From the sequence record MZ443780.1: 64,000 nucleotides of DNA. One strand, given 5' to 3'. The position numbers and the translations under genes were made by a program. Every line of letters begins with the position of its first letter. Position 1 is the stretch's first letter. Positions 5,587-35,114 of the stretch are shown here, one piece after another. The notes under the pieces were generated by a model. It was not told where the DNA came from. It was given only the letters and a program-made list of their open reading frames with translations, and made no database searches.

Positions 5587-7521
5587 ATGGGCGTTCAGGT
5601 AGGTCGTCGTCATCTTGGCGGCGCACAGCCAGAGCCTGCGAAAAAGAAAGAGAAATCTATCGGCGCAGCCTCTTTACCGCGCGAGATAGGCAAAGCAATC
5701 CGCAGTGAGAGTTCGAGGCGCAATCTTGACTTCGTATCTCAATCTGCGGGTGGCGCAGGAATGGCTGCCGGTAATATGCAAATTGGTACTGTCCCTCTTG
5801 ATATCGACTTAGAGCCGATGATGGAAGGTATGGACTATGATGCTGACGACCGACAGCTATTCAATGTCTACCGCGATATGTATCACTTCGACCCAATCTG
5901 CGGTTCTTACGTGGACTTGTTCTCAACGCTGCCATTCTCCGATGTGAGTTTCAGTGGCGCGAAAGACAGTGTGCTCGAACCGTATTACGAAGTGAATGAA
6001 CGTTTGTCACTGACGACCAGTATGCCGAACATCACTACCGATATTCAGGTTACTGGTGCGTTCGTCGGCAGTATGATCTACAACAAAGACCGCAAAAAGT
6101 TCATCGACTTGATGACGCACCGTTACGACAACATCGACGTAACGCCACTGCCGTTTATCAGTCAGGACCCTATGTTCGAGCTGCGCATTCCACAGTACGT
6201 TAAAACTGCCTTCGCAAAAGAAGGTAAGCGTATTGACGCGCTGAAAAAAGAGCTGGGCCCTGGGTTTGTCGATAAGCTAATGAACGACACGACGATGGAG
6301 CTTGACCCCATCGGCACGATCTACATTCCGCGTAAGACGTTCAGCTTTGGTGAAGGTATCTCGGTGTTACGCCGTGTGCTGCCAATCTGGTTGATCGAAA
6401 AGAACCTGTATCGAGGAACGTTGATTGAATCGGGTCGTCGTCAACGCGGTATCTTACACGCCCAGTTGGGTGATGGTGATCAGTGGGAACCGTCGCAAGA
6501 AGAAATGGACTTTATGACCGACCTTCTTCTGTCTGCGGATAGTGACCCGATTGGATCTATCATTACCACGCGCTTAGGCGTGAACATCAGTGAGTTCCGC
6601 CAAGGCGGTGACTTCTGGAAGATTACGGACATCTGGGACCAGACTGCTCAATTCAAAATGCGAGCTATGGGCATCAGTGAAGCGTTCCTCAGCGGCGAAG
6701 CGAACTATGACTCAGGCGCTGCTGGCCTGACGATTTTCGTCGAAGCGATGCGGGCGTTCCGTGATCATCTGACGCGTAAAGTCTACTATGAGAAGGTATT
6801 CCCTCTTATCAGTATGATGAATGGTCTGGCTGTTCAGCGTAACGGCAAGATCATTAAGAAGAACAACATGATGGAAGGTGGCTTGACCGAAATCATGTAC
6901 AAACTGAATGACGGTAGCAAACTGTTTATTCCGAATGTGCATTGGTCTAAGCAACTGCGACCTGATGTTGACCAAGCGATGATGGAAAACTTACGTGCGA
7001 TGACTGAGCTGGGTGTTCCGGTTCCATTACGTGCAATCGCTGCGGCTGGCGGGTACAACTTCGACCAGATTCTTATGGATCAGGATGAAGACCTCGCAAT
7101 GCGCCGTAAGCTGATGGCGTATCGCAAACGTATGGCAGAGATTGACGCTGAGTTCGCTCCTCCTGAACCTGGTGGTGGAGGCGGTGAAGACAGCTTTAGT
7201 TCTGTCAGTTCTATGTCTGCTGACCTCAAACGTCGCCGCAGACACATCGCTGGTATCGGCCTGTCTTCTGCTGTGCTCGGTGGCGAACAACGCAAGCTGC
7301 TCAATCGTGACTTCGGTGAACGTTCCGAAATCTACGAAATCGGTAAGACTGGTAAGAAGAAACACGTCTTCCGTCAGTCTGTCGCAAACAGCCGTGCGAA
7401 TGACGCTATCTGGAAAGCGGCGAAGAACTACGAAGCAAACAAAACGATGCCTCTTGATGACGGCAAGGTTTCCTTCAAGCCTACCGCGCAGGAGCTTCGT
7501 GCAATGTCGAGACTCCGTTAA
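5587..7521 (+). CDS. portal protein (probable)
   Basis: 644 aa downstream of TerL; YRDMYHFDPICGSYVDLF N-terminal helix and helical/coiled-coil C-terminal part typical of large-phage portals; GAGG SD. Confidence 0.65.
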   Translation: MGVQVGRRHLGGAQPEPAKKKEKSIGAASLPREIGKAIRSESSRRNLDFVSQSAGGAGMAAGNMQIGTVPLDIDLEPMMEGMDYDADDRQLFNVYRDMYHFDPICGSYVDLFSTLPFSDVSFSGAKDSVLEPYYEVNERLSLTTSMPNITTDIQVTGAFVGSMIYNKDRKKFIDLMTHRYDNIDVTPLPFISQDPMFELRIPQYVKTAFAKEGKRIDALKKELGPGFVDKLMNDTTMELDPIGTIYIPRKTFSFGEGISVLRRVLPIWLIEKNLYRGTLIESGRRQRGILHAQLGDGDQWEPSQEEMDFMTDLLLSADSDPIGSIITTRLGVNISEFRQGGDFWKITDIWDQTAQFKMRAMGISEAFLSGEANYDSGAAGLTIFVEAMRAFRDHLTRKVYYEKVFPLISMMNGLAVQRNGKIIKKNNMMEGGLTEIMYKLNDGSKLFIPNVHWSKQLRPDVDQAMMENLRAMTELGVPVPLRAIAAAGGYNFDQILMDQDEDLAMRRKLMAYRKRMAEIDAEFAPPEPGGGGGEDSFSSVSSMSADLKRRRRHIAGIGLSSAVLGGEQRKLLNRDFGERSEIYEIGKTGKKKHVFRQSVANSRANDAIWKAAKNYEANKTMPLDDGKVSFKPTAQELRAMSRLR

Positions 7522-7877
7522 TGTACAGCATGGCAACGTGTGCAATTGACGGTGAGGAAACGGTGGTTGTGTATCGCCACCCTATCTTCACTGACTACGG
7601 CTTAGGCTTGAAGATTAACCGCGGTGGCGACATGCCTCTTGTTGAATGTAGCATCGTTACAGGCAGCATTGATGGTGTGTCTAAGCTCGAACCAGTGACT
7701 GACCATACTGCACCACTCGAAGTGCAAGCATGGTGTTTTGCTGGTATGCTCTCTTTAAGGGACATGCGGGAATCTGTAAATATGCAGAGCCTATCATTAG
7801 ATGCTTTATTCCCGAATAACGGGGGCATCGTTTATTATCAAACCCAAACTCAGCAAAATCAGGAGAGTGCATCGTGA
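7521..7877 (+). CDS. hypothetical protein
   Basis: TAATG coupling to portal gene. Confidence 0.6.
   Translation: MYSMATCAIDGEETVVVYRHPIFTDYGLGLKINRGGDMPLVECSIVTGSIDGVSKLEPVTDHTAPLEVQAWCFAGMLSLRDMRESVNMQSLSLDALFPNNGGIVYYQTQTQQNQESAS
7771..7782 (+). promoter_or_regulatory. candidate phage promoter AATCTGTAAATA
   Basis: Exact copy of recurrent motif, ~90 nt upstream of 7874 gene, inside a CDS. Confidence 0.4.
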
Positions 7878-10499: not shown

Positions 10500-11086
10500 T
10501 GGATTTGTCTGCAATCGGTTACGCTTCGAAACAGTTCCGAGTAATCCCCGTTGAGAAGGGAAATCTCGTGACTGATTTTATTCAAGGTAAGTTCCGCGTT
10601 ATCGGTGTTGAGTGCAATGCCCGTGGTGCTTACGGTAGTCCTATCCAGCAGAGTATCGCACGGCGCTTCCCGGAAGTCATGCGCAAAGTCGAATCAGTTG
10701 ACTACGAGCATGAACTGACTATCGGTAAGACTCATCTTATTCGTGTTGGTACTCAACACCGCCGCAATCTGTTTGTTGCTAACATGCACATTGCTCGCGG
10801 TTTCGGTCTGGGCCTCAATCGCACTATGTCCGAAGGCCCGATCAACCGTTTCAGTGAGCAGCACCTGACGCGAGCGTTTGAACATCTGATTGAACAGTGT
10901 GATAAAGAGAACATCGCACTCGACCGTCAGATCGCTATTCAGCGCTTCTATGGTGGACTCGGCGGAGTTTCGTGGGAAGAAGTATGTGTAGTCCTTGATG
11001 CTATCTGTGAAAAGCACAAGTTCAACATGTACGCGTACCTACCACGTAACTACAATTCTAACTACGTGCGTGGTAGCGCGAACTAA
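10499..11086 (+). CDS. macrodomain protein (Poa1p/TARG1/T4 Tk.4-like), divergent
   Basis: KGNL..., VECNARGAYGSPIQQSIARRFP, VANM, IAIQRFYGGLGGVSWEEV match the macro-fold pattern GDL/CN..G.MG.GIA/P.IG.GLGG..W. Confidence 0.7.
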   Translation: MDLSAIGYASKQFRVIPVEKGNLVTDFIQGKFRVIGVECNARGAYGSPIQQSIARRFPEVMRKVESVDYEHELTIGKTHLIRVGTQHRRNLFVANMHIARGFGLGLNRTMSEGPINRFSEQHLTRAFEHLIEQCDKENIALDRQIAIQRFYGGLGGVSWEEVCVVLDAICEKHKFNMYAYLPRNYNSNYVRGSAN

Positions 11087-11098
11087 CTCTGGGGTGTA

Positions 11099-11443
11099 TT
11101 GATGAATACAATACGCGGATTTGATTGGCTCTTTTACGGAGATGGAACCGATAGCGGCCAACACTCAATTTTAAGTATCGTCGTTGAACAAGCGGCGAAA
11201 TCAATACAGGTGGAAGTAGAACAAGGAAGTGCCGTGCCTGTAATTCAAGCGATTCAGGAAAACGAAGTCCTGTACGCGCAGACGGACGAAGGGCTTTATC
11301 GCGTTCGTTACAGTTGTTCGTTCCGTGGTCTTGACCCGAACTTCTTCCCGCAAGACAAAACGACATTCCGTTTGAAGCTCATCTCGTTTGAGTTTCTTCC
11401 GGGAGTTACTACGCACGATAAGCTGTTGGAGTACGTGCCATGA
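11099..11443 (+). CDS. hypothetical protein
   Basis: 114-aa ORF in operon. Confidence 0.6.
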   Translation: MMNTIRGFDWLFYGDGTDSGQHSILSIVVEQAAKSIQVEVEQGSAVPVIQAIQENEVLYAQTDEGLYRVRYSCSFRGLDPNFFPQDKTTFRLKLISFEFLPGVTTHDKLLEYVP

Positions 11444-12201
11444 TTACTGTGCAGAAAATTGAAGCCCGTTTAAAAAGACTGGACTATACTCGCCCCTCAC
11501 CTAGTCGTGAGATGCTTGAGGGACTTATGAAAGATGGACGCACTCGCATTCTTAGCAAATCAGCTTCGAGTGACCTGTGCAAAGACTCGATGGAATACTT
11601 CGAGTTCTGCCTTTCGCAAGTCGGCTCTTTCTGTACTGCGTCGTACAATGCTGTGGAGATTGGTCTGTCTCTCAACATTCAACCGATTTATATCGCTGCT
11701 GCTATTCACCTGTACGGTAGCGATTGGCAGTTCCGTTTCCTTGAGCTTAAACGTTTCGGTCTGCTTGCTCGTGGTGATTACTCTGTGTGGAAGTCTGCTG
11801 ACGCATGGTTCGGCCTGGGTGAATGTCGTCGTCGCTTAGTACGTGCTGGTGTGACGAACGAAATCTCCAGCGGTCAGTCTGAGCTTCGCATGGCAGTACG
11901 CAAAGGTGAGCTGGACAAGATTCGTGAGATTGCCAAGAAGTTTCCGCATCGCATGATGTCCATTCTCGACGTGAAGCGTGACCCACTGTATAACGATCCT
12001 CGTATTGCGGCATCACGTAAAGCGCGTGAGAAAGCAAAGGCAGAAGCTGCTGCTGCCGGTAAGAAGCTGGCTGAACCTCGTTCGTACTCTGACCTGAGCG
12101 CTGTGTTCAACGGAGCAATCGCGCCTCGTAATACTGATCGTGGGTTTAGCGATTCGTCAGAAACTCGCGGTACGGTGAACGGTCGTCGTTTTCGTGTCTG
12201 A
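11440..12201 (+). CDS. hypothetical protein
   Basis: 253-aa ORF, ATGA overlap. Confidence 0.65.
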   Translation: MITVQKIEARLKRLDYTRPSPSREMLEGLMKDGRTRILSKSASSDLCKDSMEYFEFCLSQVGSFCTASYNAVEIGLSLNIQPIYIAAAIHLYGSDWQFRFLELKRFGLLARGDYSVWKSADAWFGLGECRRRLVRAGVTNEISSGQSELRMAVRKGELDKIREIAKKFPHRMMSILDVKRDPLYNDPRIAASRKAREKAKAEAAAAGKKLAEPRSYSDLSAVFNGAIAPRNTDRGFSDSSETRGTVNGRRFRV

Positions 12202-12251
12202 TAACTGCGAACGGTAATTTCTGCTGTCAAAACAAATAACGGAAACCTCCA

Positions 12252-13022
12252 ATGAGCAACATTGATAATACAATGCCTGAGGGCAAGTGGGAGTTCAACG
12301 AGCCTGTTGCTGCTGTGTTTGATAACATGCTGCAAAACTCAATCCCGTCGTATGGCCGTATGCGCGACTTGACCTATCGTCTGGGTCGTCAGTTCGTCAC
12401 GCCCGGTACTGCTATCGTTGACCTCGGAGCTTCTCTGGGTCGTGCTATTGAGCCGTTCTGCAAAGAGTTCGGCGAGTACATCTACGTTCACGCTGCTGAC
12501 CGTCCTGAGCCAGATCGTGAAATCGGTAACATGTACTGCTGCTACGAAGTCGCTCCTGCGATGCTTGAACGCCTGCGTGAAAACGAAGTGCTGAAAGCGG
12601 CCAAAGCGAAAATCAGTAGCGAATCGCTGGTGGACGTTGACACGTTCCGCTTCGACGAACAGGTTGAGTGCTCGCTCATTCTGTCTGTACTCACTCTCCA
12701 GTTCACGCCGATTGAACATCGTCAACACGTCCTTGAGAAAGTCTATGACTCTCTTGCAAAAGGCGGTGCGTTCATTCTCGTTGAGAAGGTTCTCGGTGAC
12801 GACAACTTCCTCGACCGTCTGCTGGTGGACACGTACTATCACATGAAAGGCGACAACGGCTACACGCAAGAATCTATTGCTTGTAAGCGTAAGTCACTCG
12901 AAGGTGTTCTGGTACCTGTCAAAGCTGCATGGAACGAAGAACTGCTGCGCAAAGCGGGTTTCAACCGTGTAGAATGTTTCTACCGCGATCTCAACTTCGC
13001 CGGATGGATCGCAATTAAGTAA
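12252..13022 (+). CDS. cmoA: carboxy-S-adenosyl-L-methionine synthase (CmoA family)
   Basis: Full-length similarity to E. coli CmoA as recalled: W.F.E.VA.VF..M...S.P.Y, VDLGASLG, TLQF, GGAFIL.EK, K..NGY....I..KR..LE.V (Arg corresponding to the Cx-SAM-binding Arg retained), L.KAGF....F...NF. Confidence 0.88.
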   Translation: MSNIDNTMPEGKWEFNEPVAAVFDNMLQNSIPSYGRMRDLTYRLGRQFVTPGTAIVDLGASLGRAIEPFCKEFGEYIYVHAADRPEPDREIGNMYCCYEVAPAMLERLRENEVLKAAKAKISSESLVDVDTFRFDEQVECSLILSVLTLQFTPIEHRQHVLEKVYDSLAKGGAFILVEKVLGDDNFLDRLLVDTYYHMKGDNGYTQESIACKRKSLEGVLVPVKAAWNEELLRKAGFNRVECFYRDLNFAGWIAIK

Positions 13023-13032
13023 GGGAAGTAGC

Positions 13033-14295
13033 ATGAAAGTAAACGGGCGTATCTTAGCAATCGTACCGCACAAGACTCTGGCTGATCGCACGAAGTCTGG
13101 TGTTGGTGCTTACATCGACGGACTCGAAGCGTATGGTTTCTGCGACTTCATCACTGACGGTGAGAACAGTTCCGTAACCAAGAGCTTGTGGTTTAACTAC
13201 GGTGATACCACGCTGAGTGACGGTTATAAAGTGGGGCACATTCAAAGTGAACTGCTTGCTGCTCTTGAGCGTCATCCGTATCGTGCAATCATTTGCAGCA
13301 CATACGAAGCGATTGAGGCTGCTGTCGGTCTGGGCTTGCCAAAGATTATGCCCGTTTACTATCGTTCGCATAACAGCTTCCTGTTGACGCAAGATCTCAA
13401 TGGTCTCGGTGCTGAGAAGATTCACCGTGCTCTACTGCAAGCTGGCGTAACTGGTCTGCGTGTGTTAGCGAACTGTGATTCAACTGCAAACAATCTGGCA
13501 TCACGTTATCCTGTTGCTGCGTCTGTCGCGTACAACTCGTTCAACGTGCCTGACTACAATCCACCAGCAAAGCGCAAGCCGACGCTGTTGATTATCTGTC
13601 GCTACGAAAAGGTTAAGCGCCCTGCGTTTGCTGCTCGTATCGCTGCTGCATCTGGTCTGCCTGTTCGTGTGATGACAGGCAGTGATCGCCAAGTTAAAAG
13701 CTGGCAGAAAGAACTGACCGATGCCGGTGTCAAAGACCATACAGTCGTTAGCGGTATCAGTGGCAAAGAGAAACTTGAGTTCATCGGCGCTTGTACCGTG
13801 GCTCTCTCCTGCGCTGAAATCGAATCGTTCGCTAACGGTGTGCGTGAGTCTGTACCGTACTGCCCAACGTTCATCGTGCAAACATCGAAGTTCGACTGGG
13901 CGAAAGATTACACACGCTTCTGCTCTCTGGACAAACACATCCACGTTCGCACTGTTGACCGTGTGACAGAGCAGGAAGTCACTGAGCTGGGTAATGAGAT
14001 TGCTTACTGGGCTACTACTCGCTACCTGAACAATGCTCAACGTAAAGACTTGATGACCAAGTGGGTTGCTCAAGTCGATAAGGGCTGGGCTGACTTTATG
14101 AAGAATGCCGTTGTTGCTGATGACGGCAAGCCCATGAAAACTGACCTGTCGAAAGAACTCGAACAAAAAGGCGTAGTAGACTGGTCAGAAGTACCTGCGC
14201 TTATGCGTACTGTAAAAGCATTACACAAATGCCATGCTCGTATGGGCCTGACATTCGATGGCACCAAAATCAAAACTAAAGGAAGAAAGAAATGA
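13033..14295 (+). CDS. GT-B (GT4-like) glycosyltransferase
   Basis: ICRYEKVKR (cf. GRL..EKG) and ALSCAEIESFANGVRES (cf. PS..EGFG....EA). Confidence 0.65.
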   Translation: MKVNGRILAIVPHKTLADRTKSGVGAYIDGLEAYGFCDFITDGENSSVTKSLWFNYGDTTLSDGYKVGHIQSELLAALERHPYRAIICSTYEAIEAAVGLGLPKIMPVYYRSHNSFLLTQDLNGLGAEKIHRALLQAGVTGLRVLANCDSTANNLASRYPVAASVAYNSFNVPDYNPPAKRKPTLLIICRYEKVKRPAFAARIAAASGLPVRVMTGSDRQVKSWQKELTDAGVKDHTVVSGISGKEKLEFIGACTVALSCAEIESFANGVRESVPYCPTFIVQTSKFDWAKDYTRFCSLDKHIHVRTVDRVTEQEVTELGNEIAYWATTRYLNNAQRKDLMTKWVAQVDKGWADFMKNAVVADDGKPMKTDLSKELEQKGVVDWSEVPALMRTVKALHKCHARMGLTFDGTKIKTKGRKK

Positions 14296-15326
14296 GCGTG
14301 ATTGGTGATATCTATAACATTCCTCAACCGTATGCGATGTACTGCGGCAATGCCAAAACCAAAGCAATGGCAAAGATTACTGCCGGTATGGTTGAGTGGG
14401 CTCCTGAGAAGGTATGTTGTGTAGTCGAAGACGCTGAACGTTTGTTCGCTGACGTACCGTGTGTTGAAGTGCGCGATCTCGATAAGACCGACGCTGAAAC
14501 TCTGGTTATCGGCTTTGCGCCATTTGGCGGTCAGATTAACGATGACATTGATCGCGTTGTCTGCGAAGCATTAAAGCGCGGTCTGAACGTTGCTGCTGCT
14601 CTGCACGTCAAACTGGCAGACAATCCTAAATACTTCGCGCTCGCTCGTGAGCACGGTGTATCACTGTATGACTTCCGTCATCACCCTGAGCAATATCCTC
14701 TGGGCACTGGTATTCGTCGTGACGGTATTCGCGTTCTGACTGTTGGCACCGACTGCTCCTGCGGTAAGAAATTCACTGCGCTCGCTCTGACCAAGAAGCT
14801 GACCGAGATGAGTCAGAAAGCTGTGTTCTGTGCTACAGGCCAGACAGGCTTCTTGATTAGCGGGCGTGGCATCAACAACGACACTGTGGTTGCTGACTTC
14901 CTTGCTGGTGCTGCTGAGTGGCTTTCACCTGATGACAAAGACGCAATCTATTTGATTGAAGGTCAAGGCGCTATTCGTCACCCTGCGTATACTGGTGGCA
15001 GCATGAGTCTGATTGCTGGCTCGCAACCTGATGCGCTCGTTATGTGTCACACTGTTGGCCGTAACGTCATGATGGGCACTGAGCGCGAGATCAGTATCAC
15101 GGACGAAATCTCTGCTAACCTTGCAGCGGCTGCGATGCACGACTGGTACCCTCGCGTTGTTGGTATCAGTATCAACTTCTGCGAGTCTGGTATGGACAAA
15201 GAACAGCGCAAGAAATATCTGGCGACTATTGAGCGTAACATCGGTTATGTAGCGTTTGATCCGCAAGAAGGCGGCGAAGCGTTTGACCGTGTTGCTACTA
15301 CCATCGCGTTGCTGTCGCGCCCATGA
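14292..15326 (+). CDS. DUF1611-family P-loop protein (DgcN-like)
   Basis: LVIGFAPFGG, G.NVAAALH, VLTVGTDCSCGKKFT, ATGQTG, DTVVADFLAGAAE, IEGQGAIRHPAY, GSQPDALVMCH. Confidence 0.88.
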   Translation: MSVIGDIYNIPQPYAMYCGNAKTKAMAKITAGMVEWAPEKVCCVVEDAERLFADVPCVEVRDLDKTDAETLVIGFAPFGGQINDDIDRVVCEALKRGLNVAAALHVKLADNPKYFALAREHGVSLYDFRHHPEQYPLGTGIRRDGIRVLTVGTDCSCGKKFTALALTKKLTEMSQKAVFCATGQTGFLISGRGINNDTVVADFLAGAAEWLSPDDKDAIYLIEGQGAIRHPAYTGGSMSLIAGSQPDALVMCHTVGRNVMMGTEREISITDEISANLAAAAMHDWYPRVVGISINFCESGMDKEQRKKYLATIERNIGYVAFDPQEGGEAFDRVATTIALLSRP

Positions 15327-16258
15327 TAGTCCTAATAGACAACGCTGCGTTAGCGAGTAATGCAGCGTATTTAAAATCACTCGCACCGACCATGATTCCA
15401 GTTGTGAAAGGTAATTTCTATGGGCATGGTTTAGATTGCGTGACAGCGTTCGCGTCTGACTTTGACGTGCTTGCAGTGCATAACGTCCGAGAGGCATTGA
15501 CGCTGCGTGAGCTTGGGCTTGACCACACGCTGCTGATTCTCGGTGGTACTGACGCGCGTATGTGGAATATAGTTCCGGTATTGAATGCAGCGCAAGCCTC
15601 AACGTATGAAGGCCAGTATGCTGTGTTTGCTGATTGGGGCTGTCGTCGTATCAATGTCAGCCCTGGCCAACTTACCAGTCGCCCAGCTCTCGTTCTCATT
15701 CACTCTGAGGACTACCGTCAGCCTGTGTCTGCGCACACTGCTAACGAGATTGCTGTGCGTTACAACATGCCGCGCTCTCGATTGTCTGTAGGCTCAAGCA
15801 TGAATGCGCTTACACCAGACGCGCCGAAGTTGATGCCGCGTGTTGGTATGGCACTTACCGGTTATAGCAGTGATGAAACTGTTAACGGTAATTTGATCGT
15901 AGCGAAGACAGTGCTTGCTCGCATCTGCGATAAGCTGGATGCTGGTCGAGTATTTGGTTACGGTGCATTAGTGCCTAACAGCGCACACATGTTCCTGTAT
16001 TCGATTGATGTGGGTTATTACGATAACTTATATCAGTCAGAGAACAACACGCCTGTGCATTGCCCTAATGTGCCACACGCTAAGGTCACGTTGCTTACTG
16101 GCGTTGCGCGATCAATCAGCATGAACCATGCCTTCGTATTGTCAGATACTGAGCTACCGTTCGACTCTGAAATTGAATTGCTCGGACCGAACGTTCGCGC
16201 AGATTATCTGGCCAAACTTCACGGAACAACAACTGCGAATATTTTAAGGCTGGGTTAA
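15323..16258 (+). CDS. alr: PLP-dependent alanine-racemase-like enzyme
   Basis: PLP lysine motif VVKGNFYGHG, EALTLRELG, PRVGMALTG, catalytic Tyr in FGYG, VGYYD, SISMN; shortened barrel. Confidence 0.75.
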   Translation: MIVLIDNAALASNAAYLKSLAPTMIPVVKGNFYGHGLDCVTAFASDFDVLAVHNVREALTLRELGLDHTLLILGGTDARMWNIVPVLNAAQASTYEGQYAVFADWGCRRINVSPGQLTSRPALVLIHSEDYRQPVSAHTANEIAVRYNMPRSRLSVGSSMNALTPDAPKLMPRVGMALTGYSSDETVNGNLIVAKTVLARICDKLDAGRVFGYGALVPNSAHMFLYSIDVGYYDNLYQSENNTPVHCPNVPHAKVTLLTGVARSISMNHAFVLSDTELPFDSEIELLGPNVRADYLAKLHGTTTANILRLG

Positions 16259-16260
16259 TC

Positions 16261-17130
16261 ATGGCTAAACACGTTTTGCGTAAGCTGTTTGAACAGCACG
16301 TTAAGCAAGAGGTTAAAGCGGACAAAGTTGCAGTGCTGCTGTCCAGCGGCCTTGACGGACTTGTCAGTGCTCTTGCTGCCCACGACTTAGGAAAGAAGGT
16401 ACATGCCTTTACTTTCCAGATGGGTGACAACGAAAGTTTTGACAGCAAACACGCACGTAAAGTAGCAGAGAAGATGGGCTGGGAGTTCACGCTTGTGAAA
16501 GTTCCTACGTCCGACACTGCTATCGCTCAGGGCTGGCGCACACTTCACGCCAAGTATCGCTGTATCAAAAAGCGTGACTACGAGTGTGCTTACCCTATGG
16601 TGTATTGCTACAAGGCAATCAAAGAAGCAGGTTACAAGTACGTTCTCAGCGGCCTTGTTGCTGACGCTTACTTCTGCTTTGCGCGTAATACCCACATCGC
16701 AAAAATCAGCGGCCCGCATAGCGTACTCGAAAAGTTCGACGAGTATCGCAAAGAGTATTGGGCGCCGTGGTTCAAGAACGGTAAGAAGTCTCTCGGCGTT
16801 GACGGCTATAATCCAAGTGGTATGCTGCAACACGAAATGCTGTGCGACACTTTCGGCCTGACTCACGTTAACCCGTGGCTGTTGAAAAAAGTCCATGACT
16901 ACTTCATCGGTCGTTCGTGGCAAGAACTAAATCAACCCAAGCAGAAAATGCCAATAACAGAAGCCTGGGCTGATCACATCGCTGTGGTAGGGCATCGTCC
17001 TCACCGTGGCTATCAAACAGAAGCTGGAGTACCTGCGTACTTCGAACGCTTACTGGATAATCCTGAGATCAACTTCAACGGTCGCAAGCGTGTTATGGAC
17101 CTTGCGCGTGATTGGTCAACGAGGACTTAA
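16261..17130 (+). CDS. asparagine-synthetase-like ATP-dependent amide ligase lacking glutaminase domain (CmoY-like)
   Basis: PP-loop VAVLLSSGLDG, HAFTF, VLSGLVADAYF (cf. SGEGADELF), NPWL..., K..ITEAW; only 289 aa. Confidence 0.75.
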   Translation: MAKHVLRKLFEQHVKQEVKADKVAVLLSSGLDGLVSALAAHDLGKKVHAFTFQMGDNESFDSKHARKVAEKMGWEFTLVKVPTSDTAIAQGWRTLHAKYRCIKKRDYECAYPMVYCYKAIKEAGYKYVLSGLVADAYFCFARNTHIAKISGPHSVLEKFDEYRKEYWAPWFKNGKKSLGVDGYNPSGMLQHEMLCDTFGLTHVNPWLLKKVHDYFIGRSWQELNQPKQKMPITEAWADHIAVVGHRPHRGYQTEAGVPAYFERLLDNPEINFNGRKRVMDLARDWSTRT

Positions 17131-17131
17131 T

Positions 17132-17752
17132 ATGTTAGTACACATCATTGACGGAAGCGTAGGCGGTAACTATGTATTCCATAATCTGCAAGAGGCTGGC
17201 ATCAACGCGCGTGTTCATGCTCCTAGTGATCCACGTCGCCGCGCAGTAGCAGCAACCTATCCTTCGCTGTCTATGGGATTTACTCCCGAAGAGATTGAGA
17301 AGCATATCGGTAATGTGCTTGGCACGTATCGCGGTCTGTTCTTGATTAGCAGCTATGTTGGTTCGCTGGTGGCTCGCAGTATGATTGACCAGTGTGGTCA
17401 GAGTCATAACATCATCTACTGCGATGATCTCAAGTGCGGGTCTACGCCTGTCGTTGCTTCCTCGATTTCTGTAAATGTCTATCAGAAGCAACGACAACTC
17501 GGACGCATTGCAGGTCGAATCAAACACTTCGACTTCGACCATGAGTTCATTGTAGCTGACAAGGCTGTGCGTTTTGCAGCAGGGTCAGAATTTGATGAGC
17601 ATGGTGCGCGTGAAGAACTGGACGACACGCCCAAGTTCTTATCGAGTCCGTCAATGATTGTTGCTGCACACAAACTCGGTGTGAAGCGCAACGTGTATCA
17701 CAACTACGCTGGTCTGGTGCAAGAGTTCCTTGAAAAGCGCCAGCAGCAATAA
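17132..17752 (+). CDS. degenerate Asp/Glu-racemase-fold-like protein
   Basis: Start re-assigned to ATG 17132 after GAGGA; IIDGSVGG resembles MurI FDSGVGG; catalytic-Cys positions appear to be Ser (LISSY, LSSPS). Confidence 0.35.
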   Translation: MLVHIIDGSVGGNYVFHNLQEAGINARVHAPSDPRRRAVAATYPSLSMGFTPEEIEKHIGNVLGTYRGLFLISSYVGSLVARSMIDQCGQSHNIIYCDDLKCGSTPVVASSISVNVYQKQRQLGRIAGRIKHFDFDHEFIVADKAVRFAAGSEFDEHGAREELDDTPKFLSSPSMIVAAHKLGVKRNVYHNYAGLVQEFLEKRQQQ

Positions 17753-17764
17753 CGCGAGGGTACG

Positions 17765-18028
17765 ATGATCAATCGCTTTCAGTTAAAACGAGTTCCAGTG
17801 ATTGAAGCATGTCAGTGGAACGGCGAGAACATTGATGAGATGAATCAATTTCTCAACGGTAGCGGTTACGTTGTAGGTCGCTATGTTCAGATTGGTGTTA
17901 CAGACCAATTCGGTAAGCCGACTCTTGCAAACGTATCAGTCGGCAACTATGCAGTGAAACACGAAGACGGTAAGTTCGACGCAATCACCGCATCAGAATT
18001 GATGGACCTTTACGTACTGGCGGATTGA
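17765..18028 (+). CDS. hypothetical phage protein
   Basis: IEACQWNGEN motif common in small phage proteins; GAGG SD. Confidence 0.7.
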   Translation: MINRFQLKRVPVIEACQWNGENIDEMNQFLNGSGYVVGRYVQIGVTDQFGKPTLANVSVGNYAVKHEDGKFDAITASELMDLYVLAD

Positions 18029-18035
18029 GGAACAA

Positions 18036-18491
18036 ATGAACCTGTTTTCTATTCTAAAGCAGCAAGTGAAGAAAGCGCTGTCGACCGAAGCTAACCACGA
18101 ACCAGAAATACGTGCGCAGTTCGACTGGCGTTACGCTCTTGAGATCAAAGGGCAGATGTACATTGTAGGCAAGACGGGCGCTAACACCTGCTTCTATATT
18201 GAGCCAGGTACTACCGAGCCTGTTGGTTGTTATCCAGATGCGCTTCTGGAGAAGATTGATCAGTGGGGTGGCAGCAAGTATGTTTCGTTTGCTATCTACT
18301 TCAAACACTTCGATAGCCCTGTCGCTGAGAATATCAAGACAGAAGAACAAGCGCTGAAAGGTAAGCCGAAGACATTTAAGAAAGGTTACTTCATCTGCGG
18401 TGTGACACCGAAAGGCAAGCGTATCAAACTGTATCGCTTGCAGCAAGGTCTCAGCGGTATGCAGTGGGTTGCCGTCGAACCTAAAAAGTAA
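18036..18491 (+). CDS. hypothetical protein
   Basis: GAGGA SD; 151 aa. Confidence 0.7.
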   Translation: MNLFSILKQQVKKALSTEANHEPEIRAQFDWRYALEIKGQMYIVGKTGANTCFYIEPGTTEPVGCYPDALLEKIDQWGGSKYVSFAIYFKHFDSPVAENIKTEEQALKGKPKTFKKGYFICGVTPKGKRIKLYRLQQGLSGMQWVAVEPKK

Positions 18492-18519
18492 TCACGGTCT
18501 GTCCGTGTGAGGAGCAAGT

Positions 18520-18813
18520 ATGATTAGCGACATTACAGTTGGCCACATCTATAAGTCACCAAGCAATAAACCTTTTATTGTTGACTGCATTGCTGCGCAC
18601 GGACAGGATTGCTCATTGCCTATGGTTGTCTATCGTAATCTTGAAGCTACGTTTGACAAACCTGCTGATAGCATTTGGGTAATCCCTGAATCGTTGTTTG
18701 TGATGCAGTTCTCTGAGTACGAATCAGGAGAGCACCATGAGCACAACGAGCTTGTATCATCATCTGGAGTCAAGGGGATTTTCTCCTTCTTTCTATCACT
18801 GTTGGCTAAGTGA
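18520..18813 (+). CDS. DUF1653-like small beta-barrel protein
   Basis: G.IYK......F.V..IA.H......MVVY..L......WV.P...F pattern. Confidence 0.65.
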   Translation: MISDITVGHIYKSPSNKPFIVDCIAAHGQDCSLPMVVYRNLEATFDKPADSIWVIPESLFVMQFSEYESGEHHEHNELVSSSGVKGIFSFFLSLLAK

Positions 18814-19253
18814 TACGCAAATGACTGTGCCGCTGTTTGGCTTTGACAGAGCTATGCGCGGCCTACAGGTCTACACACCAAATGCACCTAAGCATGACGC
18901 TAACCCGAAAGCCTGTCGTTACTTCACGCGAGCATTCGGTGGCAAGCAGTTGGTGTGGGGATCAGAAATTAAACCTGAACGGGTCGACCGTATTCTTAAC
19001 TGAGTCTGTGTTCAAGGCATGTGCGCTACATCGTCTTGGACTCAACGCTTGGTCCGTTCTTGGTTCAGATGTTAATCTACATCTCTATCGTCAGTTGCGT
19101 CTTCTTGGTCTGCGTTTCGTTTGTCTTGGTGACAACGATGCTGCTGGTGAAAAGTTCAGTCAGACATTCGGACTAGGCACGACGAGCAAAGACCTCGATG
19201 AGATGACAGACGAAGAACTTCGCGATCTAACTCTACCATTCTTGAGGAAGTGA
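18737..19253 (+). pseudogene. Toprim (primase-like) protein split by a +1 frameshift near 18966-18968
   Basis: ORF 18737..19003 joined to the frame of 18837..19253 gives ...LVWGSE/LNLNGSTVFLTESVFKAC...LGDNDAAG, i.e. the Toprim TE and DND motifs. Confidence 0.7.
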
Positions 19254-20352: not shown

Positions 20353-20754
20353 ATGAGACCCGAGACCATCGCACGAACGTATAGAGTCCCAAGCCAGACT
20401 TTGGAGACAGTTCACAATATCTGCGAACGCCAAGGCGTAAGATTATCTGACATTGTTCGACGCTATGCCCAATTCGTCGTGCGTACTCGCGGTGAGTTTC
20501 TGCGTTCGGCTCCTCGGCCAGAATCGTCCCAGCTCAACGTGCGTATGCCTTTTGATTTAGCACATTCGTTTAGTCTTGTGTGCAAACAATCTGGCTCTGG
20601 TACCAACACAACTGTGACCAGTTTCCTGAATGAGATCGTTCAACTCAATCGTATTCCTGAGGAACTTCTGCAAGAGTCGGCAGAAGATGTGCGTGAGTAT
20701 ATCCGCAAAGAACGTGCTCGCCTCGATACACTGGAGGCCCAACTCGGAAAATAA
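20353..20754 (+). CDS. tandem ribbon-helix-helix DNA-binding protein
   Basis: Two RHH-like units (TYRVPSQT...CERQGVRLSDIVR; LNVRMPFDL...CKQSG...VTSFL); AAGGA SD favours ATG 20353. Confidence 0.6.
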   Translation: MRPETIARTYRVPSQTLETVHNICERQGVRLSDIVRRYAQFVVRTRGEFLRSAPRPESSQLNVRMPFDLAHSFSLVCKQSGSGTNTTVTSFLNEIVQLNRIPEELLQESAEDVREYIRKERARLDTLEAQLGK

Positions 20755-20755
20755 A

Positions 20756-21598
20756 ATGACAGTAATCAGCCCCATTCGTTATCAGGGCAATAAGCGTAGC
20801 CTTATCCCTCTTATTCTTGAAAACACACCTGATGTGAAAGACTGCCCGCGTATGGTCGATGTGTTTGGCGGTAGTGCCACCGTGTGCGCGAACATGCCTC
20901 AGAAGTTTCGCGTCTACAACGAGCTTAGTCCTCAGGTGTATGAGATCGTTAAGATGCTTGTCGAGCAAGACCCGAAGAAAACATTGGGTCAAGTCAAGCG
21001 TCTGGTAAAGCACTGGTGCCTGACAAACAGCAACGAAGCGAACTATGACGCGTTTCGAACTGTCGTCCAGAAGAAGCGTACTCCCATACTTCACTACGTT
21101 GCGCACAGACACGCACACTCGAACATGCTGCGCTTTAACCAGCAGGGTGTGTACAACGTAGGCTTCGGCGATCGTGGTCTGATTGGAAAGTTCGAGGAGC
21201 TTGAGCATGAGCTTACGACATTCCACCAGCACATGCAGGGTGTTCACCTGACGAACATGAAGTACGGTAAGTTGTTGGGTAGATTAGGCAATCAACTGGA
21301 TTGCAATACGTTCTGCTACTTCGACCCACCGTATCTGGCAAGTGGCGCGATGCAGTACGGCAAGTGGACTGAATCAAACGAACGTAACCTGCTTGCTACG
21401 CTTGAACAACTCAATCGCTTAGGCGTACCGTGGATGTTGAGCAACGTTACAGAGCACAGGCATTTCTCGAACGACCTGTTAAAGCGTTGGCTAAAGAAAC
21501 ACGCGACGACCGTGCTCTACCCGAACAAAAGCTATGCGATGAACAACGGCCAGAGTGGCTCGCATGGTACTGTTGAAATTCTGGCAATGAACTACTGA
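20756..21598 (+). CDS. dam: D12-class N6-adenine DNA methyltransferase (Dam-like)
   Basis: RYQGNKRSL, VDVFGGSATV, YFDPPY, WMLSN motifs. Confidence 0.9.
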   Translation: MTVISPIRYQGNKRSLIPLILENTPDVKDCPRMVDVFGGSATVCANMPQKFRVYNELSPQVYEIVKMLVEQDPKKTLGQVKRLVKHWCLTNSNEANYDAFRTVVQKKRTPILHYVAHRHAHSNMLRFNQQGVYNVGFGDRGLIGKFEELEHELTTFHQHMQGVHLTNMKYGKLLGRLGNQLDCNTFCYFDPPYLASGAMQYGKWTESNERNLLATLEQLNRLGVPWMLSNVTEHRHFSNDLLKRWLKKHATTVLYPNKSYAMNNGQSGSHGTVEILAMNY

Positions 21599-28859: not shown

Positions 28860-29197
28860 CTACACCAGTAATTCGCTTTGACGAACAGACACGTCAACTG
28901 CTGGCAAAGATCTTCGGCATACATAAGCCGTTCTTTGTTGTGCGTCGTGATACGATCATCTCAGGTGGTGACTTGGGCTTTCGTGTGTATCTGTCGAATG
29001 GCACCAACACTGTTACCGTTCCTCGCGTTAAAGGCCTTGACTTGGGCGACAAGCTCTATCTCGGTGATGACGAGGAAGTTTATGAGTGGCATCCTCATAT
29101 AGGCTGCACGTATATGGCCATTGGCGATAATCAGCCAGAAGCACTCGCATTTGGTCTTCATCCAATCGTTTTTCACAAAGACAGTCGGAACTCTTAA
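28856..29197 (+). CDS. hypothetical protein
   Basis: ATGA overlap; 113 aa. Confidence 0.6.
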   Translation: MTTPVIRFDEQTRQLLAKIFGIHKPFFVVRRDTIISGGDLGFRVYLSNGTNTVTVPRVKGLDLGDKLYLGDDEEVYEWHPHIGCTYMAIGDNQPEALAFGLHPIVFHKDSRNS

Positions 29198-30300
29198 TGG
29201 CAAAGCAAACTCTTGATCTACGCGATCCTAATCAGTACGAACTCTATTCCCTGCATTGTGTTGACGAGCAATACATCAATCTGGGCAACGCTATCATCTC
29301 TCAGGGTACTGATGAGTCAGACCCAGGCCGTACAGAAGATACGTGGCGCACCATTATCGGCTGTGGCTTCCAGTTGTCAAACACGCTGATCGCTTTCCCT
29401 GCGTTAGTCAGTGCTCGTAAGAACTGGCTGGCAGCAGTCGATGAGATGTGCTGGATGTCTCGCGGCGAAACGAATATCAGCTCGCTCAATTCCAAAATCT
29501 GGAATGAGTGGGCAGATGAAGACGGCGAGTGCGGCCCTATCTACGGTCTGATGTGGCGCATGTGGCCTGATATCAAAACGTTCCCGACTATTGAGTCGAT
29601 GAAAGAGCGTCAGATCAGCGATGCAGAAATCGAGCGCATCTCGAAAGAGATCAATCGCATGAAAGCTGCCGGGTACACTGAAACGCAAATGGCTGACGGT
29701 CGTGTGTGCTACGAAGGTACAGTTGACCAGTTCGCTGATGCGCTGCGTCAGGTAATGGCCCGCAGTCGTTCTCGTCGTATTCGCGTTCAGGCGTACAACC
29801 CGTCCTATCTGCACATGCAGGGTCTGCCTCCGTGCCACACCGAGTTCGAGTTCAACGTAACCAAGCCGACGCTGTATGAAATCGCTCAGATGGAAGCGCG
29901 TCAAATGGCACCGGCAGAAGATTCGTTGCACATCGTTGTGACCATGAGATCGAACGATGTGCTCTTGGGCAGGCCATTTAACATCATCGGCTACAGCGCC
30001 ATGCACCAGATGATTGCCAAGTGGGCTGGCTTGAACGTCGGCAGCTTTACGCTCAACACTACCAACACGCACCTGTACACGCATCACTTTGAAGCGTTTG
30101 AAAAGCAGCGTGAGCAGTGGGCAGTTCTCGCAGACAACATTAAGCGCACTGGCGAACCTGTTGTCTATCCTATGCTGGAAATCAGCGACGACATTCTCGG
30201 TCTGACGCCGGAAGAGTTGCTGGACAACGCGAACGCAGAGTGGTTCCAGCTTCTCGATTACGCACCATCACCAGCGGTCAAAGGACGTGTGACGAAATGA
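29197..30300 (+). CDS. thyA: thymidylate synthase
   Basis: IWNEWA, GPIYG..WR, SRR, LPPCH, MRSNDV.LG.PFNI, NTHLY. Confidence 0.93.
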   Translation: MAKQTLDLRDPNQYELYSLHCVDEQYINLGNAIISQGTDESDPGRTEDTWRTIIGCGFQLSNTLIAFPALVSARKNWLAAVDEMCWMSRGETNISSLNSKIWNEWADEDGECGPIYGLMWRMWPDIKTFPTIESMKERQISDAEIERISKEINRMKAAGYTETQMADGRVCYEGTVDQFADALRQVMARSRSRRIRVQAYNPSYLHMQGLPPCHTEFEFNVTKPTLYEIAQMEARQMAPAEDSLHIVVTMRSNDVLLGRPFNIIGYSAMHQMIAKWAGLNVGSFTLNTTNTHLYTHHFEAFEKQREQWAVLADNIKRTGEPVVYPMLEISDDILGLTPEELLDNANAEWFQLLDYAPSPAVKGRVTK

Positions 30301-32278: not shown

Positions 32279-32983
32279 ATGGCAAAAACTGCTACCAAAA
32301 CAAAGGACGGAAAAAAGAAAGGCGAGTTGAAGTTTGATCTGAAAAAACTCAATTCAGTCTCTCAGCTCAAGGGCGCAGAGTACAACCCGCGCTTCATTAC
32401 TGACAGTCGCTTGAAAGCTCTCGAAGGTTCTCTCGGGAGTTTCGGTGATCTGTCTGGTATCGTGTTCAACAACAACATCAAGTCTGGTGTGTTGATCTCA
32501 GGCCACCAGCGTCTGAAATCAATCGACGGTTGGAAAACTCGCATCGAGATTCAGCCGACGACTGACAAGCACGGTACTATCGGTCTGGGCTACATTCATG
32601 CAACGCATCCGAAGAAAGCTGATCGTGTTATCAGCATTCCTCTGCGTGTCGTGAACTGGACTGATAAGAAAGCTGAGTACGCAGCGAACATCGCAGCGAA
32701 CGCCCACGGCGGTGAGTTCGATAACAAGAAGCTCGCCAAGCTGGTTGAGAAACTCGATCTGAATACGATCAAGCCTCAGCTGCTGGGTCTCGACCCGCTT
32801 GAGATTCGTGGTCTGCAAGCCAAGATCAAGATTCAGGCGAACGTCGAAGATACGAAACGTGCTGGCAAGACTACTGGCCAGATGAACGGCAGCACCGGTA
32901 AGTTTAATGAGTACAACCCTGATGATGTGGGTGACACTCTGAACTGCACCTGCCCGCGTTGTGGATTTAAGTTCGAGGGATAA
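32279..32983 (+). CDS. ParB-N-terminal (ParB/Srx-like) domain protein with C-terminal Zn ribbon
   Basis: LK.AEYNPR, G....IVFN, LISGHQRL, NIAAN..GGEFD...L..L; CTCPRCG. Confidence 0.8.
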   Translation: MAKTATKTKDGKKKGELKFDLKKLNSVSQLKGAEYNPRFITDSRLKALEGSLGSFGDLSGIVFNNNIKSGVLISGHQRLKSIDGWKTRIEIQPTTDKHGTIGLGYIHATHPKKADRVISIPLRVVNWTDKKAEYAANIAANAHGGEFDNKKLAKLVEKLDLNTIKPQLLGLDPLEIRGLQAKIKIQANVEDTKRAGKTTGQMNGSTGKFNEYNPDDVGDTLNCTCPRCGFKFEG

Positions 32984-32984
32984 T

Positions 32985-35114
32985 ATGATCATCAAGCCGC
33001 CAACCATGAAGGAAATCAACAAGCTGGCTAAACCCTGGCGTGGTATGAGTTTCTTCGCAGGTTGCGGTGGGTCTTCGACCGGTCACAAGATGGCCGGTAT
33101 CGACATTCTGTTGAGCAACGAGTTTATTGACTCTGCGCGTGAGTCGTATGAAGCAAACCACCCGACAACCAAAGTGCTGCCTCATGATATCCGTCGCTTA
33201 GACCCAAGCAAGCTGTTGCGCTACTGCGGTCTTGCTAAGGGTGAGCTGGATTTGCTTGATGGTAGTCCTCCGTGCTTTACCGAAGACACAATCATCCACA
33301 CTGCTGACGGCATGAAGTTCATTTCTGATATGCACGTCAACGATCTGGCAATGACGAGCGTTGGTGAATACTTTCCTGTGTACGACACTATGGTTCGTCC
33401 GTATGTCGGTACGATGCACAAGATTGAAACGATGCTCGGTAGCAACAAAGCAACGCCAGAGCACCCGTTCTTTGTTCGTCGCTCTCAGGCAGACGGTAGC
33501 TACTCTGAGCCGTTCTGGTGTGATGCGAAAGACGTGCAAGAAGGTGACTTGCTCGGTACGCCGCGCACTACCCCTGACATGGGGATTGACGTGTATCAGG
33601 CTCAGATTGATCAGTTGCCTAAGTTAGTAGCGGACTGGGTGACTTACCCTGAGTTCTGGTGGATGATTGGTCACTGGTGTGATCGTGGCACAATCGAAAC
33701 AGTTAACGGTGTTGACGTCATCTGCTTCGAGTCGCACTCAAGCCTTGAGAACGCGATGATCGAGCAGGCGTTTGATGCGCTTAAAATCAGTAGCCTGAAT
33801 CGTATCGACACGACAACGGCGCAGCGCAAAACATTCCGCACTGTTATCGAAGCAGAGCTGGTGCAGTTCCTGCGTCGATTCGTCAGTCAGGAGCAGAACA
33901 AGTTTTCTCGTCGTCTGCCTGCAATCGTGTTCCATTTGTCAAACGAGTTGAAGCAACAATTCATTCTCGGTTGTGCGGGGCATGACTACGTGACTGCTAT
34001 GGGCACAAGCCTTGCTATCACATCTGATAGTCGCCGCTTCCTGATTGAGCTGAACTACCTGTGTGCGTCTGCTTTCAATCGTCCGCTGTTTGACGGTCTT
34101 ATCTGGGCAGACGTTAACTTCGGTAGTGCGTTAACGCCGCGTGAGCGTAACAGTTCACGAGCGCATATCGGCTTCCTGTTCCTGCAGGATGAAGCGCTGT
34201 TCATGCACGAGTTCTCCGATGAAGACCCGCATCTCTGGGTTGAAGTGATTGAGAACCTCGCGTATCAGGCGACCTGTGACGTGTATAACTTCTCTGTGCA
34301 GACAGACGAGACATACGTTGCAAATAGCATGGTCGTTCACAACTGCAAAGGCTTCTCTACTGCTGGTGTGAAAGAAGAAGGCTGGGGCAAAGAAGTTAAA
34401 TACAGCGACAACAAGTATCAGCAGGTTGATGACCTGTTCGATCAGTATTGCCGTATGCTTCAAGGCATGGAGCCAAAAGTGTTCACTGCGGAAAACGTCA
34501 GCGGCTTAATCAAGGGTACCTCTAAAGGGTACTTTGTCGAAATCATGAAGCACTTCGACAGATTAGGTTATTATGTTCGTGCTCCGATGTTGAATGCTTG
34601 CTGGCTGGGTGTACCGCAATCGCGTGAACGTATCATCTTCATGGGTGTGCGTAAAGACGTTGCCCACGCACTCGGATATAAGTCTGCTCAGACCGCTGTG
34701 CCTGATGTTATCCCGTGCGAGACGCAAGCGTTTCTCGGCGATGCGTTGCCGCACATCATGCGATACAAAACAACGCAGCGTGACCTGATCAAATATCTGC
34801 CTGCCGTTAACGGTCCGATGCCTACGATTACTGCTGCTGATGCGATTGCGTATGAGACTGCGCGATTCTCGTCTGCTGGCTTTATCGAAGACAACAAAGG
34901 TCATCGCCGTAAGCTGACCATTGACGAACTCAAAGTTATCTCTGGACTGCCGTCTGACTATAAGCTGATGGGTGAGTTTGAAGAACAATGGGAACGTCTT
35001 GGTCGTATCTGTGTGCCAGCAATGACACACGCTGCATCTAAGGCTTTCATCGAGCACATTCTTCTGCCGTATGCGAAGAAGCGTAAGAAGAAGCCCGGCG
35101 ATATCTTTAAGTAA
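32985..35114 (+). CDS. C5-cytosine DNA transferase (Dcm fold), intein-containing, probable carboxymethyltransferase (CmoX-like)
   Basis: Motif I SFFAGCGG, II NEF, IV GSPP|CKGFS, VI AENVSGL, VIII QSRERIIF, IX RKLTIDELK, X LGRICVP (Arg in place of Asn); GAGG SD before ATG 32985. Confidence 0.85.
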   Translation: MIIKPPTMKEINKLAKPWRGMSFFAGCGGSSTGHKMAGIDILLSNEFIDSARESYEANHPTTKVLPHDIRRLDPSKLLRYCGLAKGELDLLDGSPPCFTEDTIIHTADGMKFISDMHVNDLAMTSVGEYFPVYDTMVRPYVGTMHKIETMLGSNKATPEHPFFVRRSQADGSYSEPFWCDAKDVQEGDLLGTPRTTPDMGIDVYQAQIDQLPKLVADWVTYPEFWWMIGHWCDRGTIETVNGVDVICFESHSSLENAMIEQAFDALKISSLNRIDTTTAQRKTFRTVIEAELVQFLRRFVSQEQNKFSRRLPAIVFHLSNELKQQFILGCAGHDYVTAMGTSLAITSDSRRFLIELNYLCASAFNRPLFDGLIWADVNFGSALTPRERNSSRAHIGFLFLQDEALFMHEFSDEDPHLWVEVIENLAYQATCDVYNFSVQTDETYVANSMVVHNCKGFSTAGVKEEGWGKEVKYSDNKYQQVDDLFDQYCRMLQGMEPKVFTAENVSGLIKGTSKGYFVEIMKHFDRLGYYVRAPMLNACWLGVPQSRERIIFMGVRKDVAHALGYKSAQTAVPDVIPCETQAFLGDALPHIMRYKTTQRDLIKYLPAVNGPMPTITAADAIAYETARFSSAGFIEDNKGHRRKLTIDELKVISGLPSDYKLMGEFEEQWERLGRICVPAMTHAASKAFIEHILLPYAKKRKKKPGDIFK
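33273..34343 (+). mobile_element. intein (357 aa) with degenerate LAGLIDADG-like region in catalytic PC motif
   Basis: Starts CFTEDT; block B ATPEHPF; WMIGHWCDRG and FILGCAGHD remnants; ends VYNFSV...YVANSMVVHN followed by Cys+1. Confidence 0.92.

Follow-up and report, generated by a model that had tools for sequence, protein, structure and literature searches.

A putative CmoY-type DNA amide ligase with a fixed DgcN-like neighbour in the Erwinia jumbo phage pEa_SNUABM_40

Which carboxylate does the stand-alone asparagine-synthetase domain of a fire blight phage activate, and which amine does it attach there? The gene in question (16261..17130, + strand) lies in a window, by which we mean the whole 64,000-nucleotide stretch of DNA analyzed, that corresponds to bases 1-64000 of Erwinia phage pEa_SNUABM_40 (MZ443780.1), a 267-kb jumbo phage of Erwinia amylovora, the fire blight bacterium. 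The stretch compared, 11000-19000, is 100% identical at matching coordinates. Near relatives of this phage are pEa_SNUABM_3, 20, 23, 31 and 32 (97-99.5% identity), while Dickeya phage AD1 and Erwinia phage Alexandra are more remote; whole-genome checks were made on a sister genome (G001) that is 99.5% identical to pEa_SNUABM_40. The gene has an ATG start and a TAA stop, encodes 289 aa and is surrounded by densely packed genes on the + strand. It is real and under strong purifying selection, since dN/dS against the orthologues of AD1 and Alexandra is only 0.09-0.10 and 37 positions are conserved at 97% or more in an alignment of 75 diverse homologues.

The encoded protein consists of the synthetase domain of asparagine synthetases only. 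Pfam PF00733 (Asn_synthase) matched residues 6-139 above its cut-off (E 6.9e-16), and the AlphaFold2 model, for which 45 homologues served as input, has a mean pLDDT of 95.5. When the whole chain was searched with Foldseek, beta-lactam synthetase, human ASNS, E. coli AsnB and carbapenam synthetase (CarA) were retrieved (E 4.5e-10 to 4.5e-8, TMq 0.62-0.70), the full-length matches being to synthetase domains only; other PP-loop enzymes (QueC, NAD synthetase and LarE) reached a TMq of only 0.30-0.40. With the single sequence as query, no PDB sequence was matched at E ≤ 0.01, and the kinship with AsnB and beta-lactam synthetase was reached only by profile and fold searches. The family profile aligned SSGLDG (aa 28-33, 16342..16359) to the PP-loop of AsnB and SGLVADA to AsnB SGEGSDE. 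Within the PP-loop, S28, G30 and D32 do not vary across the family and S29 and G33 are clade-specific; they replace the G and the S of the canonical SGGxDS, and this departure is conserved throughout the clade described below. The second motif, SGLVADAYF (aa 130-138, 16648..16674), corresponds to SGEGSDEVF (346-354) of AsnB, with L132 in place of E348. Closer to the C terminus, K229 of N224-x-P226-x-Q228-K229 (16930..16947) takes the alignment position of K443, the catalytic Lys of beta-lactam synthetase, and of the Lys that is conserved (EK) in human ASNS. A glutaminase domain was found neither in the open reading frame nor by Pfam, and there is no room for an N-terminal one because the upstream gene stops at 16258. 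Furthermore, G001 has one Asn_synthase gene only and no GATase_7 match anywhere. Open reading frame, PF00733, fold and the absence of GATase_7 all agree with the earlier note, which had described a 289-aa protein with SSGLDG and SG..AD..F but without an Ntn glutaminase.

The ligase shares with AsnB (E. coli, 1CT9), human ASNS and beta-lactam/carbapenam synthetase the synthetase fold, the chemistry of a PP-loop ATP pyrophosphatase and an acyl-adenylate intermediate. It differs from the AsnB family in having no Ntn domain, a Leu for E348, an identity of about 20% and scores far below the NCBIfam AsnB cut-offs, and its substrate is presumably a DNA base and not a free amino acid. An assignment as glutamine-hydrolysing asparagine synthetase B was rejected on the missing Ntn domain, a TIGR01536 score of 57.1 bits (cut-off, 267.1) and SGLVADA for SGEGSDE. 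Likewise, QueC (27.5 bits; cut-off, 150.3) and NadE (23.5 bits; cut-off, 63.65) were rejected, both with weak fold matches.

A much closer relative is known from Synechococcus phage S-B43, in which CmoA makes carboxy-SAM, SpCmoX, a C5-methyltransferase homologue with SPPC and with an Arg (R350) for the motif-X Asn, yields 5-carboxymethylcytosine (5cxmC) in DNA, and SpCmoY, a glutaminase-less homologue of asparagine synthetase, ligates glycine to the 5cxmC of DNA in an ATP-dependent reaction, as demonstrated in E. coli and in vitro (PMC12783734, Nat Commun, December 2025). SpCmoY performs both half-reactions by itself; glycyl-carboxymethylcytosine is the single known product of the pathway, and according to the authors, other ligase clusters must use unidentified amines (PMC12783734). 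For the nucleosides, [M+H]+ values of 286.1 (5cxmdC) and 343.1 (glycine amide) are given there (PMC12783734). The enzyme class, CmoY, is hence already known. The pEa_SNUABM_40 ligase is 34% identical to SpCmoY (UniProt A0A514ABJ0; E 3e-54, aa 14-287 versus 10-263), and both are glutaminase-less synthetase domains of similar length (289 versus 271 aa) that are encoded along with CmoA and CmoX. The two have in common S28, G30, D32, K103/K104, E108, C109, G131, D135, R163, N224, P226, Q228, K229 and H248, and a C-terminal R..R..D...DW is also invariant; the catalytic set common to both clades is intact in the ligase. A glutamine-dependent CmoY-like cluster (A0A7T0Q3R0) is likewise tied to CmoA and CmoX and predicted to amidate 5cxmC (PMC12783734), but it retains a glutaminase domain that supplies ammonia from glutamine, whereas the ligase studied here has none. 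Taken together, the gene product is probably a CmoY-type amide ligase for 5cxmC in DNA, an assignment that we hold with good confidence on the strength of homology. The proposal of the earlier note, that the enzyme adenylates a carboxylate and uses an external amine to amidate a carboxymethyl group on DNA, gains support from the likeness to SpCmoY and from the homologues of CmoA and CmoX in the same phage. Two features weigh against the ligase reading, namely the non-canonical PP-loop and a CmoX that is encoded 16 kb away and depends on intein splicing.

The carboxy-SAM synthase homologue CmoA (12252..13022, +) is the first gene of the operon (TIGR00740, E 1e-41; 31% identity to SpCmoA). The CmoX homologue is a 717-aa open reading frame (32961..35114, +) of the C5-cytosine carboxymethyltransferase type, which lies downstream of the ligase and not adjacent to it and is, in contrast to the SpCmoY system, split by an intein. 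Homology to SpCmoX is found on both sides of this 357-aa intein (~33273-34343), which sits exactly at the catalytic cysteine (GSPP / C..VVHN / CKGFS), so that the +1 Cys of the intein is the catalytic Cys of SPPC. In ERLGRICVP, the motif-X Asn has given way to the diagnostic Arg, equivalent to R350 of SpCmoX. No CmoB homologue was found in the sister genome. By homology, all three published components (CmoA, CmoX and CmoY) are present in the phage. Among 50,697 phage records, as many Erwinia/Dickeya records contain the ligase as contain CmoA (48 + 2 in either case), and both are also found in PaBG, a Yersinia phage, a Staphylococcus phage and the S-B43 group. AD1 and Y3 are known to share the methyltransferase (CmoA), an asparagine synthase and a DNA-cytosine methyltransferase, and their relative JA11 is without all three (PMC6143709). 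Of the 80 IMG/VR loci retrieved with the ligase profile, about 45, which belong to the sister clade, are compact CmoY-CmoX-CmoA operons.

Some observations on these partners may be added. In metagenome locus L012, CmoX has an intein at the same insertion site, and L014 carries an intein-free allele. The gene at 20630-21598, annotated as "DNA methyltransferase" in relatives, was considered as CmoX and rejected, as it encodes a Dam-like D12-class N6-adenine DNA methyltransferase with DPPY that shows no similarity to SpCmoX; the phage probably also has 6mA. A further clade of 26 CmoY homologues, starred in the tree (L083, L086 and 24 other IMG/VR loci), adjoins genes for a T4-type RNase H and DUF6433, and neither CmoA nor CmoX was found within these contigs (flanks of up to 10 kb); either the partners are located elsewhere or these enzymes have a different carboxylate substrate.

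Between CmoA and the ligase, the window encodes three further proteins, all on the + strand. The first (13033..14295, 420 aa) has no Pfam match. It was assigned as a GT-B (GT4-like) glycosyltransferase by its language-model neighbours, by PF00534 in a 40%-identical relative and by its predicted fold (pLDDT 84), which matched TarM, GlgM, BshA, MshA and a phage glycosyltransferase (E 1e-10 to 1e-9). The second (14292..15326) is a DUF1611, DgcN-like protein, whose whole length aligns to PDB 7XRJ (E 5e-62) and in which the P-loop GTDCS.GK is preserved. PMC12363236 and the GapMind preprint describe DgcN as D-glutamate N-acetyltransferase, and the preprint gives 7XRJ as the DgcN of Yu et al. 2023. 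With the NCBIfam DgcN model, the phage protein scored 307 bits, below the equivalog cut-off of 480 bits; furthermore, it is encoded in a DNA-modification operon, whereas DgcN belongs to a catabolic cluster for D-Glu. The third (15323..16258, 311 aa) is a short alanine-racemase-like PLP enzyme that retains the lysine motif VVKGNFYGHG. Neighbouring genes, from CmoA through to the one that follows CmoY, overlap by up to 4 nt or are at most 10 nt apart (-4 to +10 nt), so that they form one translationally coupled operon.

How do these neighbours relate to the ligase? Fetched loci were annotated with the proteins of the window as queries, and metagenomic homologues were added. DUF1611 adjoins every ligase that is at least 53% identical to that of pEa_SNUABM_40, plus one outlier of 38%, and it was never found beside SpCmoY-type ligases (34-40% identity). 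In AD1, the start and stop codons of DUF1611 and ligase overlap. Indeed, DUF1611 homologues are present in 34 of the 50,697 phage records, and these are the same 34 that have a ligase of at least 82% identity. When 94 ligases were placed in a maximum-likelihood tree, those linked to DUF1611 fell on one side of a branch (starred) with an SH-aLRT of 96, or 99 without the long-branch outlier, the tree being of a quick method with SH-aLRT as its only support and with a root left uncertain by the very great branch lengths of two types (Y3 and SNUABM_5). The label of DUF1611 linkage changes once on this tree. About 29 alignment columns are diagnostic between the DUF1611-linked and the SpCmoY-type clade. 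The signature comprises SSGLD[GS] and not SGGVDS (the PP-loop of SpCmoY), RD and not TH after CxKK, L132 and not W/I, and RNT and not KKA. It also includes an insert of about 13 residues within ~aa 169-187 (16765..16821), in which W170, G174 and L178 are conserved and which is missing in SpCmoY-type ligases, and HRPHRGYQTE (aa 245-254, 16993..17022), which is K.H.NLQLG in SpCmoY-type ligases and a candidate specificity determinant. The ligase therefore differs from SpCmoY in these motifs, in its separate and well-supported clade and in its constant DUF1611 neighbour, and represents a distinct CmoY sub-family that is absent from the December 2025 paper; neither DUF1611 nor the racemase is mentioned there (PMC12783734).

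Around the obligate pair, glycosyltransferase (GT) and racemase are optional. DUF1611-CmoY is found in AD1 and Alexandra, GT-DUF1611-CmoY in pEa_SNUABM_7 and in loci L013 and L097, DUF1611-racemase-CmoY in L098, and GT-DUF1611-racemase-CmoY in the pEa_SNUABM_40 window, L009 and L096. In two metagenomic loci, the whole pathway is combined in a single operon, as CmoX-GT-DUF1611-CmoY-CmoA in L013 and as CmoX-CmoA-GT-DUF1611-Alr-CmoY in L096, and both CmoX proteins have SPPC and ER.GR.

DUF1611 itself is only 56-61% identical to its counterparts in the AD1, Alexandra and SNUABM_7 types, with an adjoining ligase of 82-85% identity; its divergence may follow the accessory gene set, with or without racemase. 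Other genes were seen in metagenomic members of the DUF1611-linked cassette: a DAHP_synth_1 family gene right behind CmoY (L009:14162-15025), which could serve either a Kdo8P-type sugar step or an increased supply of prephenate to CmoA, a GNAT acetyltransferase (L097:9192-10100), and, in one locus, both a ThiF-like E1 enzyme and a DUF1611 protein with the C-terminal domain only (L095:4541-5266 and 7193-7771).

In our model, CmoA would produce carboxy-SAM, and CmoX, once its intein is spliced, would carboxymethylate C5 of cytosines in the phage DNA to give 5cxmC. By homology to SpCmoY and to the AsnB/beta-lactam synthetase family, the ligase would bind ATP at the PP-loop and adenylate the 5cxmC carboxylate; an external amine would then attack the acyl-adenylate and displace AMP, leaving a hypermodified cytosine with an amide linkage. 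Glycosylation of the adduct may follow, and the outcome would be DNA that is poorly recognised by host restriction and other nucleases. While fold, family, partner genes, co-occurrence and purifying selection were seen directly, we infer 5cxmC-DNA as the substrate, the ATP/AMP mechanism, which amine is used and in which order the steps take place. A literature search found no report of DNA modification for pEa_SNUABM_40.

Because the clade has its own signature, an obligate DgcN-like partner and, optionally, a racemase, glycine appears unlikely as the amine, and a D-amino acid is the best, albeit tentative, guess. For the D-amino acid as such, it is only the neighbouring genes that speak. In phages without the racemase, the D-Ala and D-Glu pools of the host could be the source. 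In its full form, our working model is more doubtful: the ligase and its DgcN-like partner might attach an amine of the D-Glu/D-Gln type, or D-Ala/D-Ser supplied by the racemase, to 5cxmC, the GT-B enzyme might then glycosylate the product, and the ligation might be split between an adenylating and an acyl-transferring enzyme. Given the constant pairing of this sub-family with a DgcN-like enzyme, the group attached to cytosine is probably new. Two points fit poorly with a D-amino acid. DgcN acetylates a free alpha-amine, which would be consumed if ligation goes through it, and neither D-Ala nor D-Glu offers the hydroxyl (or similar) group that a glycosyltransferase requires as its acceptor. 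Possible ways out are that the amine is a hydroxy- or diamino-acid, that a second amine is acetylated, or that the ligase is split, with acyl transfer by the DgcN-like protein.

It is imaginable that the amine is simpler. The ligase might join 5cxmC in DNA to ammonia, giving 5-carbamoylmethylcytosine, or to glycine, with DUF1611, racemase and glycosyltransferase acting elsewhere or later. Glutaminase-less asparagine-synthetase domains can use free ammonia, as is established for AsnB-type enzymes. Glycine, in turn, is the substrate of SpCmoY (PMC12783734), and glycosyltransferase and racemase are only optional in the clade. However, a simple amine would leave about 29 clade-diagnostic columns, including the 13-aa insert and HRPHRGYQTE, to be accounted for, as well as a DUF1611 protein that is present in the same 34 phage records as the ligase and adjacent to it or translationally coupled. 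We therefore consider this reading rather unlikely.

Still less probable is that CmoY just adenylates 5cxmC and that the DgcN-like protein passes the (cytosin-5-yl)acetyl group to a D-acidic amino acid. Such a division of labour has some chemical appeal, as the amide of 5cxmC and D-Glu is formally an N-(substituted acetyl)-D-glutamate and thus the product scaffold of DgcN, and it would be in line with the obligate pairing of CmoY and DUF1611, with the overlapping codons in AD1 and with the match of DUF1611 to the DgcN structure; the clade-specific insert of CmoY could be a docking surface. On the other hand, SpCmoY alone performs both half-reactions (PMC12783734), and the whole catalytic set is among the residues conserved across both clades. 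That the target is not DNA at all but a free metabolite or an RNA carboxylate (N-acetyl-D-glutamate, cmo5U of tRNA or, for an auxiliary asparagine synthetase, aspartate) is very improbable: although CmoA is natively an enzyme of a tRNA pathway, CmoX is not adjacent in pEa_SNUABM_40 and there are weak family matches to QueC, NAD synthetase and LarE, the scores lie far under the cut-offs for AsnB (57 versus 267 bits) and QueC (27.5 versus 150 bits), E348 of AsnB is replaced, the phage has no CmoB (as checked in G001), the ligase of L013 and L096 shares one operon with an Arg-signature CmoX, and SpCmoY, the nearest characterised relative, acts on DNA.

Returning to the amide ligase for 5cxmC-DNA as the preferred reading, a comparison of Erwinia jumbo phages suggests which part of the modification varies. 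CmoA is 75-92% identical across these phages (85-92% between pEa_SNUABM_40 and pEa_SNUABM_35, Y3 and others), whereas the ligase beside CmoA in pEa_SNUABM_5 (L007), Y3 (L008) and pEa_SNUABM_35 is only 24-33% identical and without DUF1611. Since CmoA is conserved while the ligase diverges and DUF1611 is lost, the ligase module has been exchanged between phages whose backbones are otherwise near-identical, which points to the amide substituent as the component that host defences drive to diversify. Y3 encodes a 2OG-Fe(II) oxygenase near its ligase.

The sub-family is clearly delimited by a fixed DgcN-like partner with modular extras, the racemase and the glycosyltransferase, and it is represented in phages of Erwinia amylovora and Dickeya solani that are in culture and available. 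The four combinations of genes that occur naturally provide a ready-made deletion series for a new DNA hypermodification. If our model holds true, a D-aminoacyl (glyco)carboxymethylcytosine would be a kind of DNA base for which the literature search found no description.

Downstream of the ligase, a gene for 206 aa (17132-17752) starts 1 nt past the CmoY stop. It has no match in Pfam, PHROG or NCBIfam; language models relate it weakly (0.88-0.92) to alpha/beta (Ser) hydrolases, which may serve as a lead only. It was found in Alexandra-type phages and Y3 and is absent from pEa_SNUABM_7 and the metagenomic cassettes. The 151-aa protein encoded at 18036-18491 (phrog_23597) has counterparts in L009, L013 and L096, distant loci in which they lie directly 3' of the cassette (E 1e-42 to 3e-9); it is either an extra member of the cassette or part of a conserved backbone synteny. 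Farther downstream, a thymidylate-synthase homologue (29197-30300) has 367 aa, over which the Pfam model of 266 positions is stretched from aa 24 to 365, corresponding to about 100 additional residues.
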